DNA from: Neoconidiobolus thromboides FSU 785
Lineage: Eukaryota > Fungi > Entomophthoromycota
NCBI GenBank assembly: GCA_025603075.1
Contig: MU626445.1
Coordinates: 1 to 37,877 of the forward strand
DNA: 37,877 nucleotides
Direction of reading: 5' to 3'
Below are positions 29,703 through 37,877 of the stretch, piece after piece (the stretch's first letter is position 1; each line of letters opens with the position of its first letter). The notes beneath the pieces are model-generated. The model searched no databases, was not told the origin of the DNA, and was given only the letters and a program-made list of their open reading frames with translations. The translations under genes were made by a program, and so were the position numbers.

Positions 29703-30726
29703 ATATAATGAATTAGCTATTATAGAAATGAAATAATACCCCTATAAAAAAAGGATTAGAGTTTTAGAACTTCAACTAGCTATACATTTAGAGTATTAAA
29801 TATAGTCAGGGGAATGTATCGGGTTGCAAAATAGCAAAAAAGCAAAAATGATAACTTTCATAAAGGTGATTGAAAAATAGAATGCCTACCACTTAAGTGG
29901 CGTCCTTATTTTTTGAAGTTTGGACAAGTACCATTATCATTATTCAAAAACAAAGAGGTTAAAACTGAGGCAAAAAATTTTGAAATACGGTTTAAGAACA
30001 TGAATATTGATAATACATTTGATTAAAATTTTATAAAAACGATATAAATGAAAGCATATGATAAGATCATTATGATTTTTTTAAACACCTTAGTTATTGA
30101 TTATTCATATTTTCACATTTAAGGTCAAAAGAGAGGTTACTATTGTTAAAGCGGATTACTTAAACTAGTAAAATATTTACACTAACGCTTTTTATATCCA
30201 ATGGAATTTTAATTACTACTACTATTTCAGCTCATCTGCGAAAGCTCTAGTTATGTGTTTAGGAGTAAAAGCTTTTCTGAAACTTATCTAAATATACGGA
30301 TTGTATTTTAAAAATTATATAATCAAATAAGTTGACTATAAAAGCTATCGCCAAGTATTTCTCAAAAGAGTTGGAACAGCTGCATAACAGAGCGTTTTAT
30401 TACTATATCAGATGTATTAAGTAATGATATGAAAATACCCTGAAATAAATAAACATGACTTTAAAAAGAACAGCTGCTATGCTAGTTCATTTTATTTTAC
30501 TTATTTTAAAATAATATCTTCTTAATTTAGTCATCATAGTCACTATTTGTTAGCATTTAATCCAATAAATTGTTAGAAAATTTGAAATTATACTATAAAA
30601 AGCAATTATTTGAAATAAACTGAAAACAATATGACTTATAATAAGACTTAGCACATTTTTATTATATTCAGGTAATAAAAAATAGTATAAAAGGAAGTCA
30701 TAGATACCCCTTTACTTTATCTTAAT

Positions 30727-31332
30727 ATGAAATTTGCATATCTTTACAACTTAGCTCTTTCCGGATTAACTATTGCTCCGGTGTTTTCTGCTGCTATATC
30801 TGAGGCTACTGAATTAAAGGCTAATAAAGCAACCACCGTAAAACTTACATATTACTGGGTTGCGGATGAGAATGATTTCCCATTGGGGAGTGAAGCTACT
30901 ATCAACAACTGCAATGGAGGTGTATTAGCAAGGGTATCGCGTGAATATTGGGAACAGGTACATATAGAAGGAAGTGGAAAATTAAGGAATGGGGATTTCA
31001 TTAATTGTGGTAATGATGATTGTAGCTGCTTTACCAAAAGTAAACCAGTAGGAAGCAATGGCGATGAATTAGAGATTTATACATCCTTAGCAGCAATTGA
31101 TCATAAAATTGGTACTAAAGTGTTTCTTAAGGATTTTGCTAACTTTGTATTACCAAATGGTAAAAAGCATAATGGTTGTTTTAAAATTTTAGATGTAGGC
31201 TGGTCCCTTGGAAATAACCATATTGACTTATATGTCCAGGATAGAAAGAATTATGAAAAAATTCAAGAGACGTTTGATGCTGATAATGTTTTAGTCCAAT
31301 TTGACTCCAGTTGCACTGTCTTAAAATACTAA
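30727..31332 (+). CDS. Secreted protein with a 3D (MltA-type) double-psi beta-barrel domain, lytic-transglycosylase-like (paralog 1), 201 aa
   Basis: Signal peptide; VKLTYYW; TSLAAIDHKIGTKVFL...LPNGKKHNGCFKILDVGWSLGNNHIDLYV matches the MltA/3D pattern (LDVG..HxD). TATAAAA at 30686-30692. Confidence 0.8.
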   Translation: MKFAYLYNLALSGLTIAPVFSAAISEATELKANKATTVKLTYYWVADENDFPLGSEATINNCNGGVLARVSREYWEQVHIEGSGKLRNGDFINCGNDDCSCFTKSKPVGSNGDELEIYTSLAAIDHKIGTKVFLKDFANFVLPNGKKHNGCFKILDVGWSLGNNHIDLYVQDRKNYEKIQETFDADNVLVQFDSSCTVLKY

Positions 31333-31654
31333 TTTATGATCTTAATAATATTTTGAATGAACTTTGTATATGACAAAATAATAAATCATCTGATCAACTA
31401 GCATAGTTTTTTACTCTATAGGCTATACCCATGACTTTTTAAATTTACATTAAGTTATTAAATGAATTTCTTAAAACCATCAAAGGTGTTTATAAAACAC
31501 CTTTTCTTGAGCAAGGAAATCTTCAATTGTGCTTTGTGAAATTTGAATTTTGTTGAAGAATTAATATTTTTTAGATTTTATTACTTTGAGAAGCTTTTTT
31601 TACAATATGGTAACATTCTTTATAAAGAAATCGGATATTGTTTAAACAAGATAT

Positions 31655-31689
31655 GGGGATGTTTCTTTTGATTTCATTGATACATTCTC
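31655..31689 (-). mobile_element. MITE copy 6, internally deleted 35-bp minimal copy
   Basis: ATAT-GGGGATGTTTCTTTTGATTTCATTGATACATTCTC-ATAT: both end types are joined with the interior lost. Confidence 0.7.
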
Positions 31690-31730
31690 ATATGTTAATT
31701 TTGAAGTTTTAGCAAGCAGAAAAACGATAT

Positions 31731-31829
31731 GGGGATGTATTTTTTCATTCAAGAATTTTGTTAACAACCTTTCCACTTAAATAGCGTTTAAAAGATGGAA
31801 AAAGTAATGAAATCAAAAAAAACATCCCC
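31731..31829 (+). mobile_element. MITE copy 7
   Basis: GGGGATGTATTTTTT...AAAAAAAACATCCCC; ATAT at 31727-31730 and 31830-31833, the latter shared with copy 8. Confidence 0.92.
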
Positions 31830-31833
31830 ATAT

Positions 31834-31927
31834 GGTGATGTATTTTTTTTAAAGAATTTACTAGCAAGTTTTTCCACCTAAATAGTGCCTAAAAAATAAA
31901 AAGTAACGAAGCCAAAAAAAACACCCC
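31834..31927 (+). mobile_element. MITE copy 8 (GGTG variant), tandem with copy 7
   Basis: GGTGATGTATTTTT...AAAAAAAACACCCC; ATAT at 31928-31931. Confidence 0.9.
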
Positions 31928-32387
31928 ATATTGTCCTCTGAAACTAGCAATGCCAAATCAATCACAAGTAGCATACACTTCAAATCATGAGGTTTTAGGT
32001 CCGCGATTAAAGTATGAAGAAGCATCCTAAAAAAATGACAATGCTATTTTCAAGCTAGTAGTCCTTTGAGGATGTACAAAAAAAGCCTTAGCATAATACA
32101 GATTACACACCTCTTTTAGCATATACTTCTCTGCGGCAGCATTTATTAAATCAATAAAATGAAGATGAGAGGCTAGTTAGAGGAATACAGTTTATTACAA
32201 TCAATTGTATAACTATCAATTAGCTAGTGGAAACACTGGAACAATATCGACTAACTGTAAGGTGTTCGCCTATCAACAATAAAGAGAAAAAATAGTTATT
32301 TAGTAGATATGACAAACATTTATTTCATATTTTTGTATAATCGTTATTATTAGTAGCATATAAACAAAGCCTGAAATAGTACTTACA

Positions 32388-33590
32388 TTAAAGATAAAAT
32401 CTAGAATCATTTTTATAATTTTTCAATAAAACGTTATAGTTTATAAATTTAGAAAATCTTATGTTTTCAAAACTAATTAACGTAAAATTAATAAAAACAT
32501 TTAAATTTGAATATCTAATACAGCTAAATTTGGCTTTGGTTAAGGAGGAGTCATTTATTGTTTTATAGATTGTAAGTAGTAGGTCGGCTTCAGATTTACG
32601 GTTTATCATTTCAAGATTATATAGGCAAAAGCATGGCGTGCGTAAAAAATTCAAAAAATCAACTTATAAAGTTGAGCTTCTAATCCATAGAGTTGTTATA
32701 TTATTGATATTCTTTGGGTAAGCTTCTTTAATTAAAAAGGATAGGTTAAAAGTCTCCGTTAAGCTCAAATAAGTGATTATTGGTATACCAAGTATAGAAT
32801 ATAAATGCTTACATGAAATATTTTTGCAAGTCACTAAACTTAGTTAATTCAATAGAAATACCTTGCTTTTTACAGTTACTTCAGTTATACCAATATCAGT
32901 TGCAGTTGGTTTTTTTAAATCCAATACTCCATTAAATACTAATTTGAAACAATCTGTAATGTAAGGTATATCAAGCTTTGTATAGTTGTTAAAATTTGCT
33001 TTTATTTTTTTCGAAGTGTTTGTATGTACGTATTCGATATAGAATTTAGTTAATTGAGAGAACTGTTTGTTAAATAAAAAATTGAGTTTACTTGAAGCCA
33101 TGTTAATACGATATAACTTAAGTTCTTAAGTTGTTGAATTTATTAATAGCTTCTTGAAGAACCTATCACAGCTGTATAGCTAATATTGGGTTTCTAATGA
33201 TACAATGATTAGTGATAGATATGGTATTATTGAGATTGTAAAATAGAAGCTTGGATAACTAACTTCTAAATGGCCCAAATCTTGAAATATTTTTTCAATA
33301 AAAAGTTTGGTACTATTTGGGCATACTAAATGATGAATTAACGAAATTAGCAATGACCTAAGATCCAAATGTTTAACGTAATAGTGATATTTCTTAAAGC
33401 CATGGTAGACTTCTTTTTCATCGTTGTGATCGTGGTAGTGCCTTAGGTTTCCATTTTACCACAAGATACACACTACTAATTTGCTCCATTCTTTGCAGTA
33501 TAAAGTCAGATTGACTTTTTCTTTGTTTAATGGATGATACATTATATCTTCAATTAAACATCTTTTCGAGACTCTCAAATTTAAAATTAC
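32388..33590 (-). pseudogene. Decayed ~400-codon ORF, MULE/Mutator-transposase-like (CxnC..HxH motif and SWIM-like CKH motif)
   Basis: Track ORFs 33180-33368, 32844-33101 and 32388-32654 are all in one frame, separated only by single stops. Upstream reads YCKEWSKLVVCILW*NGNLRHYHDHN; downstream reads VTC-KNISCKHLYSIL. Candidate DDE aspartates YSCD and YITD are ~70 aa apart. Confidence 0.4.
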
Positions 33591-34250
33591 TCATTGTCAT
33601 TAAACTCAAAGAAGTACGAGAAGCTGTTATATGCTTCTTATATTTTAACATGTTAAAATAGTAAATAGGTTGCTTCATGATAAATCCTAATCCAACATTT
33701 TAAATATATTTAATATAAAGTATGACTATATTATGAAAGTAAGTTTCACAGCTTTGTGAATAAAAGACAAAGTAATTTTATCAAATATTTACTGAAAACG
33801 TTAATAGTTTTGATTTCAGTCATTAGCATCTATTTAAACATACTTAATGTTTATAGAGGTTAAATCACTTTTTTTGGCAAGCATTTTCAAATACTGATAT
33901 CCATAGCCAATCTCTATGTGGTTAAAAATATCTCATTATTATTTGTCTTATAAATATCTCCCTAGGCAAATTTAGTTTATTAGTAAAAATATGGAGGTTC
34001 TAGTTAAAATTTTATATAGTATTAAGTAGAACTTTTTTTGTGTAAAACCAAATATATAAAGGAAAAGGTTACAACAGTGTATGGTTTTGCTTAAATTAAC
34101 GTTGCAATTAGTGACTTTTATTGGATTTTTTAATAAGAAATATAATAGGGTATTGATTATATCAATATCTGATATGTTTCAAATTATTGACAATGTTTTA
34201 AATTTGAATAGCTATGTTACAAAAGATAGTTATGATTTAAAATACGATAT

Positions 34251-34342
34251 GAGGGTGTTTTTTAGCTTCATTACTTTTTGTATCTTTTAAGCGCTAGTTG
34301 AGCGGAAAAATTAGCAAAATTCTTACACAAAAATACATCCCC
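34251..34342 (-). mobile_element. MITE copy 9, ATAT TSD
   Basis: GAGGGTGTTTTTTAGCTTCATT...AAAAATACATCCCC; ATAT at 34247-34250 and 34343-34346. Confidence 0.88.
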
Positions 34343-35022
34343 ATATATTATAAAAAACATGCAATAGTTAAAAATACTCCATTAAAATCATTATAATAAT
34401 CTGAATAAAAATTTACGTTTTAGCAATTTAAATCAATACAAAAATAAATCAAATTGATCTATACAGCTAACTAGTAGATTTTCTTATAATAACATGGAGC
34501 CAACAAAAGCTTTTAAAGTTATATAGGTATTTTCTCAAGAATCTTATAACTTATAGTTATATAAAAATTAAGTTTCAAAATAATAAGTTTTATAAATTCT
34601 AAGAGCATATTAATTTAGAATTAATATACAGTTAAACTTATACTTAAACGAATATATTGTAATTCATAACATAGATATATCATTTTTAAATGTAATAAAT
34701 TTATAACTAAATAGCCTCAATCTTTTAAATTTTGATTTTTATTATTTAGAAAATTCTAAAGTGATTGACTATCCCTTAATTTGGTAATGAAATTTAATTT
34801 ATTAAATTCATGTTTGGCTCATTACCTTGAGAAAATTCATTGATTAAAATATAAAAGGTAAATATCTATTAAAAAAGGGAAGGCAATAAAATGATAAAAA
34901 TAAATAAAGGAATATACAAAAAAATCAGGTTAGAACAAAACAAATATAAAAAGGTATAAATAGACATAACTTGAATAGATAACATTATCAATTATTTACT
35001 TTAACTCTTTCAATACTTTACT

Positions 35023-35832
35023 ATGAAATTTGGACAATTTCTTTATAGCTTAGCTCTTACTGGTTTATTTGTTGCTCCAGCTCTTGCAGCTACTTTACCA
35101 AATGATAATCAACATTCATTAAGCAAGGCCCATAATGCTGACTCTCCAATCATCTATCGTAGATCGATGGGTGGTGAGGATGAAGAGGAAAATGAAGAAA
35201 AAAGCATCAAAAAACCAAAATCCAAAAAAAAGAAGGGCAAGAAAGAATCAGAAGAATCAGAAGAATCAGAGGACTCTGAGAATGAATCTGATGAAGTTGA
35301 GATAAATGCTGTTAAAGGCAGCGGTAAAGGACAAACCGTAAAGCTTACTTATTATTGGGTTACCAATGAAAAAGATTATAAGTTAGGCAGTGAAGTCGCT
35401 ATCAAGAATTGTGATGGAGGTGTGTTAGCAAGAGTATCACGAGAATATTGGGATCAAGTTCATATGGAAGGAAGTGGAAAATTAAGGGATGGCACATATA
35501 TCAATTGCGGAGATGGTGGGTGTAATTGTTTCTTTAAAAGTAAACCAGTTGGAAGTAAAGGGGATCTATTGGAGATTTACTCATCTGTAGCAGTTAATGA
35601 TCATAAAGTCGGTTCCAATGTGTTTATTAGTGAATTTGCTAATTTAGTATTGCCAAATGGTAAGAAACATAACGGATGTTTTAAAATCATTGATAAATCT
35701 TGGTCTTTTGGAGGCGATCATATTGATGTATATGTTGAAGACAAAAAGAATTACGAAAAGATTCAAAGCAAACTTTCTACTGAAAAGGCCAAAGCACAGT
35801 TTAATGCTAGTTGTAAAGTATTAAAGTATTAA
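35023..35832 (+). CDS. Secreted 3D/MltA-like domain protein (paralog 2) with putative pro-peptide and E/K/S-rich linker, 269 aa
   Basis: Signal peptide, dibasic YRR site, acidic/basic linker, then a domain colinear with 30727-31332 (VKLTYYW..GGVLARVSREYW..LPNGKKHNGCFKIIDKSWSFGGDHIDVYV). Confidence 0.8.
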   Translation: MKFGQFLYSLALTGLFVAPALAATLPNDNQHSLSKAHNADSPIIYRRSMGGEDEEENEEKSIKKPKSKKKKGKKESEESEESEDSENESDEVEINAVKGSGKGQTVKLTYYWVTNEKDYKLGSEVAIKNCDGGVLARVSREYWDQVHMEGSGKLRDGTYINCGDGGCNCFFKSKPVGSKGDLLEIYSSVAVNDHKVGSNVFISEFANLVLPNGKKHNGCFKIIDKSWSFGGDHIDVYVEDKKNYEKIQSKLSTEKAKAQFNASCKVLKY

Positions 35833-35935
35833 AGTATTAAATATAGTTTTTTAATAATCTTATAATATATATATTGACTATATATAATAAAATAATTATA
35901 ATGATATTAAAATTTATTTTTATTTATGATTTTGT

Positions 35936-37721
35936 TTAGAAATCTTTCATGTTTATATTTAAATTATTAATATGTGGAGCCATTAAAACAACAAATCTAG
36001 GTGATAAAACTAGATCTTTATCGCTCAATTCCATTGGAAAATGTTTTAATAAGTGATATATAATTAAATAAAGTTCCATCATTGCCAAACTAAAAAATAT
36101 TAATTAATATTATAATTATTGCAAACTATGATGTATTTACTTTTTGCCAATACAAACTCTTGGACCTTTCAAGAAAGGTAAAAAATTGGGATTGTTACAT
36201 TCAAATTCATTATTAACTAACCACCTTTCAGGTAAAAATTCATTGCTATTTTCCCACTTTGAACTTAAATTATGCAATGAATAAATATTACAGCCAATTA
36301 TTGTCTACAATAAATAATATTAATAAAAATAGTAAATAAAAATAATAAATATTTACTCCTTTGGGTAGATATATGTTATTTATATGTACATTATCATCAT
36401 TAACTACTCTTTCAGGAACACCACCAGCAGCTGGATACAATCTCATTGATTCATAAATAACTGCAGATAAATAAGGATGATTTGTTTTGATTGAACTATA
36501 ATTATTATTATCGTTTTCATTGTTGTTTATTTCTTGTTTTAATTTAGTGTATACTTTATCATTTTTTAATATTAAATAGAATATCCATATTAATGTATTT
36601 ATAGTTGTACCGCTTCCTGCCATACTAAAGAACATATTAGTTATATTATTGTTATCTATTATAGAATAATTATTACATTTGAGTTAATGCTTCTGAAACA
36701 ATATCTTGTTTACTAATTAAGCCATCTTGATTACACTTTATCATATAATTTAGTAAGCTATCTGAATTCTTATTGCTATTTAATGAAATGTCAATAATTT
36801 CTGAAGCAGTCTATAATGATATTTAATTATTGTTATTATTGTTATAAGTTATAGTTATTACTTACTTTTAATAACAATTTTGATTTAGTATCGTAGTATG
36901 GTTTAACAAAACTAGGTAGAATATTGGAAATCATTAATTTATTATGATTTTCATTAATCAAGTTAATCAAGTAGTGATATTTTTCAGATTCAATTAAATT
37001 AAAATCACAGCCAAATGATAATTCATAAATAATATCTAAAGCAATAAGTTCAAGATACTTAATTAGATTGAGTTCGTTTTTAGAATCATTATTTTGTATT
37101 TTTGTTATTATTTTTGCTATTTTTTTATCAACTATTTCTTCCATATGTTTCATTGAATGATTATTAAGGTATTTTAATAATATTCTCTTCTATATTGTTA
37201 TTACCATTGTTAGTATTTAGTTTAGTTCATGGAATATAAATATACTCTTTTTAAGTGGAATGCTTTATCACGGCAGTTAAACACTGTATTTCCTAATGGA
37301 TCAAATACTGCATACAATTCGCTTTTGCTAAATTTATAGTTTTTATAAATTTCGTTGACGTCTTTCTCGTCACTAAACAATACCATATTCCATCCTATTA
37401 TAATAAGTATTAGTTATTATATTAGTTATTATATTAGTTATTATATTGCTACTATATTACCTATTCTGATAACAGGACCATACAACTCATGATATTGATT
37501 GACTATAAATGGCATAACTCCCAAAACCCTTAATATAAAAAAGTAACCAGGAAATAGGACTGAAATCAATGGTCCAGGTATATCTTTCAATTTACTGAAA
37601 AATAATTGATAAACGATCTATAAAGGTAATTTTAATATCATCCTTATATTCTTATTATATACGATTATTTTACTTGTGAGATGTAATATAAGAAGAATGT
37701 TGTTAAAAGGTATAAAATCAT
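35936..37721 (-). CDS. Cytochrome P450, complete, multi-exon
   Basis: N-terminal anchor MILYLLTTFF..IPGP..HELYGPVIRIG, I-helix AGSGTT, K-helix ESMR, PERW, heme motif FLKGPRVCIG; stop TAA 35936-35938; all exons splice in frame by eye. Confidence 0.92.
37408..37443. repeat. 12-bp tandem repeat (TATTAGTTATTA)x3 in a P450 intron
   Basis: Three perfect units at 37408, 37420 and 37432. Confidence 0.85.
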
Positions 37722-37877
37722 TTTAATACTTTTATTTTTACTTTTGTTTTTATTTTTTTACTTCTAGCTTTCAATTTGTTTATATACCTTTTGAGCTATT
37801 ACTTTCGAAGGTATAAGGATATACTTAATAACATGAACAAATGTTGTTCTTTATTAATATGAGTTAATTATTTAATA

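Follow-up and report, generated by a model that had tools for sequence, protein, structure and literature searches.

The locus

Neoconidiobolus thromboides FSU 785 is an insect-associated, early-diverging fungus, and the stretch of its genome considered here, hereafter the window, is the whole of contig MU626445.1 (37,877 nucleotides; GenBank assembly GCA_025603075.1), which we designate C188. Its forward strand carries two open reading frames (ORFs), gene 1 and gene 2, whose products very probably belong to the MltA/3D superfamily of lytic transglycosylases and retain an intact active site. The two start codons lie 4,296 bp apart, and the encoded proteins are 66% identical over their C-terminal 170 residues (BLASTP E 1e-89), with N-termini that are also alike. 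The features of the pair are as follows.

30727..31332, forward strand: gene 1, a predicted secreted MltA/3D-like protein of 201 amino acids (ORF, stop codon included)
30727..30792, forward strand: predicted signal peptide of gene 1, approximately residues 1-22, with probable cleavage near VFS/AA
30832..31329, forward strand: putative catalytic domain of gene 1 (residues 36-201), a double-psi beta-barrel in which the MltA-type insert is reduced
35023..35832, forward strand: gene 2, a paralogue of 269 amino acids (ORF, stop codon included)
35023..35088, forward strand: predicted signal peptide of gene 2, approximately residues 1-22, with probable cleavage at ALA/A (by eye and hydropathy)
35089..35319, forward strand: additional N-terminal region of gene 2, in which a short pro-like segment with Arg-Arg at its end precedes an acidic/basic low-complexity linker
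35320..35829, forward strand: putative catalytic domain of gene 2 (residues 100-269; BLASTP to gene 1 and a search of the fungus's own genome)

Both N-termini begin with Met-Lys, continue with approximately 18 hydrophobic residues and end in a small-residue cleavage motif, and hydropathy over residues 1-25 of gene 1 is 0.9-1.7; both proteins are thus probably secreted. Each domain carries six cysteines, the first at residue 62 in gene 1 and residue 130 in gene 2, with none following the hydrophobic stretch. A first-pass annotation, made from the nucleotide sequence alone, had described two same-strand genes approximately 4.3 kb apart that encode duplicated, secreted-type proteins, and the coordinates, strand, integrity of the ORFs, signal-peptide-like N-termini and sequence identity all bear this out. 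The motifs that it quoted as the ends of the domains are present but lie internally, the domain ends being approximately 32 residues downstream, and its label of Cys-rich, correct in that cysteines are present, overstates a content of six per domain.

The extra region of gene 2 has a counterpart elsewhere in the genome. An Arg-Arg-[Ser/Gly]-Met-Gly-Gly motif is common to gene 2 and to a 318-amino-acid paralogue on contig C4, and in both proteins it is preceded by a short segment and followed by a long charged linker (Glu/Ser runs, Lys-Gly repeats) and then the domain. This layout suggests that the Arg-Arg site may be a dibasic processing site and the linker a charged tether.

Fold and family assignment

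The best structural match to these proteins is E. coli MltA, membrane-bound lytic murein transglycosylase A of CAZy family GH102 (PDB 2ae0, 2pi8). An AlphaFold (AF2) model of gene 1, built with a 79-member family alignment (A1) as input, has a mean predicted local distance difference test score (pLDDT) of 90.7; values are at least 90 from residue 31 on, and the first ~30 residues, which include the signal peptide, are poorly modelled. When this model was searched with Foldseek, ranks 1-14 were all MltA (best E 3e-5, probability 1.00), followed by Pa4485 and YuiC; expansins, barwin and kiwellin ranked much lower. The first-pass annotation had named a grouping with expansin/cerato-platanin/RlpA-type proteins as the outcome that would speak against its MltA proposal; the structure search instead placed MltA on top. 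With VIA-align the model superposes on MltA 2pi8_B over 156 residues (model residues 28-195) with Z 11.2 and a root-mean-square deviation (rmsd) of 3.6 A, as compared with Z 8.4-8.7 over 84-92 residues for YuiC and Z no higher than 7.7 over approximately 80-95 residues for expansins. An identity as an expansin, cerato-platanin or RlpA-like protein was considered and rejected, as these Z scores fall below those of MltA and YuiC and as no Pfam DPBB_1, cerato-platanin or barwin match exists in either protein or in the 79 family members.

Residues 45-118 of the model form extra strands and a helix that superpose on MltA and not on YuiC, and the extra ~60 residues are, in the model, a shortened version of the MltA insert domain, an equivalence drawn solely from the structural alignment. 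PF03562, the MltA insert, is matched by neither protein at E <=1 and by none of 79 relatives at E <=0.01, and in pairwise local alignment the N-terminal half is not significantly similar to E. coli MltA against shuffled sequences (z <=0.4). The best of these N-terminal alignments still land on the Thr-x-Tyr motif and on [Q/E]-Gly-Ser-Gly followed by Gly-Asp. Compared with MltA, the window proteins are approximately half the size (156 residues align of a 335-residue chain), have a reduced insert, and lack a lipobox or lipoprotein anchor, bearing instead a predicted signal peptide of eukaryotic type and six cysteines. Likeness to MltA lies in the C-terminal 3D part, which aligns by profile with D297 and D308 matched, and in the Thr-x-Tyr and [Q/E]-G-S-G motifs, which are collinear with those of the window proteins. 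LtgG and the MltA proteins of N. gonorrhoeae and A. baumannii are homologues of the E. coli enzyme.

The second known protein of interest is B. subtilis YuiC, the stationary-phase survival protein SpsC (PDB 4wjt, 4wli, 4wlk). YuiC is the best sequence-profile match among solved structures and resembles the window proteins in being small and secreted, with a signal peptide, a 3D barrel and the same catalytic Asp; it also demonstrates that a 3D fold can cut oligomers of N-acetylglucosamine (GlcNAc). It differs in being a stripped-down barrel without the insert, of which the window proteins retain ~60 residues. The full-length architecture is shared by uncharacterised single-domain bacterial proteins annotated as 3D domain-containing proteins. 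The best full-length matches in the ESM Atlas were a Mucoromycota cluster and a Myxococcota 3D cluster (template modelling (TM) score 0.77, 170-172 residues, rmsd 2.2 A), and a cluster with MltA plus 3D came next at TM 0.63. Because the Myxococcota cluster matches over the full length, the compact architecture exists in bacteria too.

At the level of sequence, an exhaustive phmmer search recovered 496 representatives at E <=1e-3 and 116 at E <=1e-10. Among the 79 aligned members of A1, 38 match Pfam 3D (PF06725), the best at E 1.7e-15, and no other family recurs; of the bacterial proteins found with the A1 profile, approximately 100 of 116 among the matches listed carry PF06725. Among solved structures the A1 profile recovers YuiC (1e-6) and MltA/LtgG (0.002-0.009), and an hhalign comparison of A1 with E. 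coli MltA spans 76 columns with a probability of 93% (E 3e-7). These profile searches and the structural matches uphold the MltA/3D identity that had been proposed from the nucleotide sequence. The assignment is one made only at the level of profile and fold. A single-sequence phmmer search of PDB sequences returned nothing but a spurious match to PA0423 (E 0.24), NCBIfam gave no match for either gene, and tblastn against plasmids gave none.

The active site

Alignment of the profiles allowed the active-site residues of MltA to be placed on both proteins. By hidden Markov model alignment in the numbering of 2ae0, D261 of MltA falls in SVASD, D297 in LDVGG and D308 in HFDIY, and hhalign on the MltA precursor (numbering +20) agrees with this placement. 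The corresponding positions in the window are as follows.

30847..30855, forward strand: Thr41-Tyr42-Tyr43 of gene 1, equivalent of the catalytic-site Thr-x-Tyr of MltA, LtgG and YuiC
31192..31194, forward strand: Asp156 of gene 1 (GAT), equivalent of MltA D297 and YuiC D151 (hhalign column match)
31225..31227, forward strand: Asp167 of gene 1 (GAC), equivalent of catalytic MltA D308, YuiC D162 and LtgG D343 (hhalign, 2ae0 numbering)
35692..35694, forward strand: Asp224 of gene 2 (GAT), equivalent of MltA D297 (hhalign via the gene 1 alignment)
35725..35727, forward strand: Asp235 of gene 2 (GAT), equivalent of catalytic MltA D308 (hhalign via the gene 1 alignment)

Studies of the bacterial enzymes established that YuiC D151/MltA D297 binds the N-acetyl nitrogen at subsite -2 (PMC4499186), that D308 is the single acid/base, with Thr/Tyr partners (PMC8562663, PMC6667503), and that the catalytic-site Thr and Tyr have roles in MltA (T99), LtgG (T128/Y130) and YuiC (T91/Y93) (PMC4499186, PMC6667503). 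The first-pass annotation was correct that the catalytic Asp is kept in both proteins, as Asp167 and Asp235, but it assigned D308 to the GAT codons at 31192-31194 and 35692-35694. These are not the catalytic codons, because the first Asp of the LDVGG-like motif is D297 and D308 is the Asp of HFD (2ae0 numbering, hhalign; PMC4499186).

Across A1, Asp167 is conserved in 75/79 members, Asp156 in 77/79, Tyr43 in all 79 and Thr41 in 71/79; the equivalence of Thr41 and Tyr43 is drawn from profile collinearity and the fold match, pairwise sequence similarity by itself not being significant. His148 and Gly150 are invariant (79/79 each) and Glu81 is present in 72/79, and the bacterial single-domain proteins share the invariant His148-x-Gly150 and a Glu-Gly-[Ser/Thr]-Gly motif. 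His148-x-Gly150 and Glu81 are kept in bacterial and eukaryotic members of the compact subfamily alike, the corresponding residues of E. coli MltA being Phe and Gln. His148 and Glu81 may be extra active-site residues.

Distribution and descent

Relatives of genes 1 and 2 are found across the early-diverging fungi: Conidiobolus coronatus, Entomophthora muscae and Basidiobolus in the Entomophthoromycotina, Dimargaris and Tieghemiomyces in the Kickxellomycotina, Gilbertella, Rhizopus, Radiomyces, Umbelopsis, Bifiguratus and Rhizophagus in the Mucoromycota, and the chytrid Nowakowskiella. Other named eukaryotic relatives are the lycophytes Selaginella and Diphasiastrum and the springtail Allacma. 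No named Dikarya appear among the ~30 relatives with a source name, an impression that extends to these relatives only.

A FastTree phylogeny of 149 rows and an IQ-TREE phylogeny of 71 rows (LG+C20, quick search) agree; the tree is unrooted and most rows are metagenomic proteins. A single branch (Shimodaira-Hasegawa-like approximate likelihood ratio test (SH-aLRT) support 99) separates 9/9 named bacterial from 23/23 named eukaryotic sequences, and within the eukaryotic side sub-clades track fungal taxonomy, with Dimargaritales together and Mucorales together. Genes 1 and 2 fall in a 12-row clade (support 97) of Entomophthoromycotina plus two lycophytes. Cys62 follows the same division, being present in 38/40 rows of the eukaryotic clade and 0/31 of the bacterial clade; across this well-supported branch the bacterial single-domain proteins lack Cys62 and keep an Asp at the first position of the catalytic triad. 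Bacterial sister sequences that carry a name derive from Bdellovibrionota, Myxococcota, Elusimicrobiota and 'Deltaproteobacteria' metagenome-assembled genomes (MAGs), with E values down to 1e-64 for the family profile. These sequence comparisons are consistent with a single old origin, after which the family descended vertically and expanded in particular lineages of early-diverging fungi. Since the family is spread over these fungi and its members form a single clade separate from the bacterial sequences, a transfer, if there was one, would be ancient and of unrooted direction, and the acquisition specific to this fungus that had been proposed in the first-pass annotation does not agree with a single eukaryotic clade and seven intact copies in the genome.

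A recent bacterial import, or contaminating sequence, in this lineage is accordingly very improbable. That the nearest non-eukaryotic relatives are bacterial 3D proteins is what such an import would leave, but the genes are flanked by eukaryotic genes (kelch, importin-beta, UDP-glycosyltransferase, P450), their GC of 0.28-0.31 matches that of the contig, and the genome holds nine matches on five contigs. The clean partition of named sequences in the tree, sub-clades that follow fungal taxonomy, the eukaryote-specific Cys62 and synonymous divergence (dS) above 1 among paralogues point the same way. Both contamination and recent transfer were rejected on these grounds.

The homologues of Selaginella, Diphasiastrum and Allacma fusca lie inside the fungal clade, both plants within the Entomophthoromycotina sub-clade. 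Contamination is an unlikely source of the Selaginella gene, given its position on a 4.3-Mb scaffold. Transfer between eukaryotes is possible, with long branches making the placement unsure.

Evidence for transcription and selection

Several lines of evidence indicate that both ORFs are genuine genes. A portion of the window totalling 5,501 nt was compared with contigs of four small sequencing runs, which we took to be RNA by guess. One contig of 784 nt matches 35007-35790 over gene 2 with no differences, and colinear contigs over gene 1 cover 30609-30804, 30709-31224 (one difference) and 31050-31318. In the four runs contigs are restricted to the two ORFs and short repeat pieces, and none covers most of the intergenic DNA, including 31972-32339, 32892-33443, 33628-34179 and 34364-34731, in any of the four. 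Such gene-restricted, colinear contigs suggest that both genes are transcribed and that both are without introns, in support of their earlier description as intronless. Among five paralogues, the ratio of nonsynonymous to synonymous divergence (dN/dS, Nei-Gojobori) is 0.12-0.25 with dS >1. The genes are therefore constrained rather than chance ORFs, and the copies are old ones maintained by purifying selection.

A variant of gene 2 was also observed. In runs X2-X4, which carry a second organism label, contigs of high depth correspond to window 35011-35718 at approximately 91-93% identity (35 differences in 378 nt, 56 in 708 nt), with exact pieces present alongside. Either a related strain carries it as an orthologue or it is a well-represented, very close paralogue.

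Proposed mechanism and substrate

Genes 1 and 2 would, on the preceding evidence, encode enzymes that are secreted, consist of a single domain and belong to the MltA/3D lytic-transglycosylase superfamily, in effect compact versions of MltA with a shortened insert. Modelled on MltA and YuiC, a glycan would lie in the groove with its N-acetyl group at subsite -2 held by Asp156/224. Asp167/235, oriented by Thr41 and flanked by Tyr43, would serve as the single acid/base, protonating the leaving O4 and then activating the sugar's own O6, such that the beta-1,4 bond would be cut without water and a 1,6-anhydro end left behind. By analogy with the bacterial enzymes, acid/base catalysis by Asp167/235 probably yields this 1,6-anhydro product.

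The target could well be bacterial peptidoglycan outside the hypha, cut in antibacterial defence or for feeding, a reading by analogy that we favour tentatively. All characterised relatives cleave peptidoglycan (PMC4499186, PMC6667503), and the bacterial sisters of the family come from the Bdellovibrionota, Myxococcota, Elusimicrobiota and 'Deltaproteobacteria' MAGs listed above. That lycophytes and a springtail have homologues speaks against a role tied to the fungus's own wall and points to a foreign wall as the target.

A number of results weigh against the genes encoding secreted, peptidoglycan-cleaving MltA/3D enzymes. The direct match of gene 1 to PF06725 (15.9 bits, E 0.016) lies below the 23.8 gathering cut-off and gene 2 has no direct match, so that of the Pfam support envisaged at first it is the homology through intermediates and profiles that stands and the direct match that does not. 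The signal peptides were judged only by eye and a hydropathy scan. The column of the first triad Asp (MltA D261, YuiC D129) is occupied by Ile124 in gene 1 and by Asn192 in gene 2, with an Asp coming directly after in both, and is Asn in 34/40 rows of the eukaryotic clade versus Asp in 27/31 of the bacterial clade; the site is therefore not identical to the bacterial one, with the qualification that a 2-residue alignment gap lies nearby and a structural shift of the neighbouring Asp is possible. As to substrate, MltA binds chitohexaose, with which it was crystallised, and YuiC cleaves penta-GlcNAc to a 1,6-anhydro disaccharide (PMC4499186), and chitin is therefore chemically just as possible. 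In the eukaryotic clade the domain occurs in fusions with LysM (three proteins), with a CE4 polysaccharide deacetylase and, by a weak match, with GH18, and these domain combinations would fit chitin at least as well. The literature searched held no functional study of any eukaryotic member.

Loss of the first triad Asp bears on the question of whether the proteins are enzymes at all. They might instead be non-catalytic barrels that bind or loosen polysaccharide in the manner of expansins or loosenins, or secreted effectors or inhibitors akin to RlpA-like fungal proteins, with the conserved acidic residues serving in binding only. Double-psi barrels are often non-enzymatic, and expansins, loosenin, kiwellin and the Streptomyces papain inhibitor are among the weaker structural matches (Z 6-7.7), the six-stranded double-psi barrel core being common to expansins, loosenins, RlpA-like proteins, kiwellin, barwin and cerato-platanin. 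These barrels lack the insert and the 3D-type context of the catalytic Asp, however, and MltA scores clearly above them with 156 versus ~90 residues covered. The catalytic Asp, Thr-x-Tyr and the D297 equivalent are near-invariant in both the bacterial and the eukaryotic clades, and the lack of any DPBB_1, cerato-platanin or barwin match among the 79 members likewise tells against such a role, which we consider improbable.

More serious as an alternative to peptidoglycan is a substrate of the chitin or chitosan type, cut with the same fold and chemistry to leave 1,6-anhydro-GlcNAc ends. The enzymes would then act on the fungus's own wall as it is remodelled, on insect cuticle in the course of infection, or on the walls of other fungi, and we regard this as possible, if somewhat doubtful. 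The activity of YuiC and the chitohexaose complex of MltA speak for it, as do the fusions, yet LysM and CE4 act on peptidoglycan too, the GH18 match is below the Pfam cut-off and the fused proteins derive from short contigs. Seven intact copies agree with the multi-copy state often seen in wall-active families, and relatives are found in insect pathogens as well as in the mycoparasites Dimargaris and Tieghemiomyces; on the other hand, the Dikarya, which have chitin walls, are missing from the source-named relatives, and lycophytes, which have a homologue, are without chitin of their own. A shift of substrate could be reflected in the first-Asp column, where the change is specific to eukaryotes. 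In its most explicit form, which appears unlikely, the eukaryotic clade as a whole was retargeted from peptidoglycan to chitin as a non-hydrolytic 'chitin lytic transglycosylase' producing 1,6-anhydro-GlcNAc ends; the replacement of Asp by Asn at the first position of the triad, and the additional disulfide, would be the marks of this shift.

Genome copies and local organisation

The window is one contig of a 24.6-Mb, 799-contig assembly and is AT-rich throughout (GC 0.20-0.33); besides genes 1 and 2 it carries two kelch proteins, a UDP-glycosyltransferase, an importin-beta and a P450 fragment. The nine genome matches comprise seven intact copies, on contigs C188, C33, C4, C31 and C117, and one broken copy on C33 (TGA and TAG stops) that is split over two of the nine. 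The broken copy, at C33:6292-6782, is the third family copy there and adjoins an intact 202-amino-acid gene; a public 279-amino-acid gene model appears to run this intact gene together with part of the broken copy.

One end of the window is duplicated.

34504..37877, strand not applicable: 3,374-bp stretch including gene 2, present as an inverted copy at the start of C33 (blastn versus C33:1-10000)

This stretch matches C33:1-3374 in reverse complement at 99.97% identity. The two contigs terminate at one and the same base, and the match breaks off abruptly at 34504. The likeliest explanation is an inverted (palindromic) duplication whose centre is unassembled and which joins C188 to C33, rather than two alleles. 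Joined head to head, the two contigs would form a locus with five family copies. Inside the inverted duplicate, at 36288-36635 on the reverse strand, is the cytochrome P450 fragment (Pfam positions 270-364), which is probably one exon of a larger gene running toward the contig end.

Between the two genes, a short repeat occurs at 31734-31834 and 34258-34348. Contigs from each of the four runs connect ~31820-31833 directly to ~34258-34272, skipping approximately 2.44 kb, and the repeat pieces reach very high depth. The two repeat stretches thus have the appearance of the termini of a 2.5-kb intergenic element. This is as expected for a miniature inverted-repeat transposable element (MITE) derived from a decayed autonomous transposon.

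Significance

To our knowledge, the MltA/3D fold has been studied experimentally only in bacterial proteins. The literature searched contained no paper on a fungal family of 3D/MltA-like proteins; one paper on Mucoromycotina names GH104 and not this family. UniProt and JGI automatically name several relatives '3D domain-containing protein'. The term undescribed, which had been attached to the pair, consequently holds for function and not for the family label. What the window reveals is an uncharacterised eukaryotic clade of a known kind of enzyme, not a new system: a clade that is conserved, multi-copy, probably expressed and intact at its catalytic Asp, and that extends over chytrids, Zoopagomycota and Mucoromycota, including the arbuscular mycorrhizal Rhizophagus. 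The residues to replace in a point mutant are Asp167 and Asp235, which differ from the residue first singled out.

Lysozymes of families GH24 and GH25 have already been reported in fungal genomes, and if the proteins described here cut peptidoglycan, they would add to these a further fungal tool for antibacterial action or bacterivory. If they cut chitin, they would bring a new reaction type to the biology of the fungal wall or the cuticle, and a 'chitin lytic transglycosylase' forming 1,6-anhydro ends would, if real, be an enzyme class not described for fungal chitin turnover.

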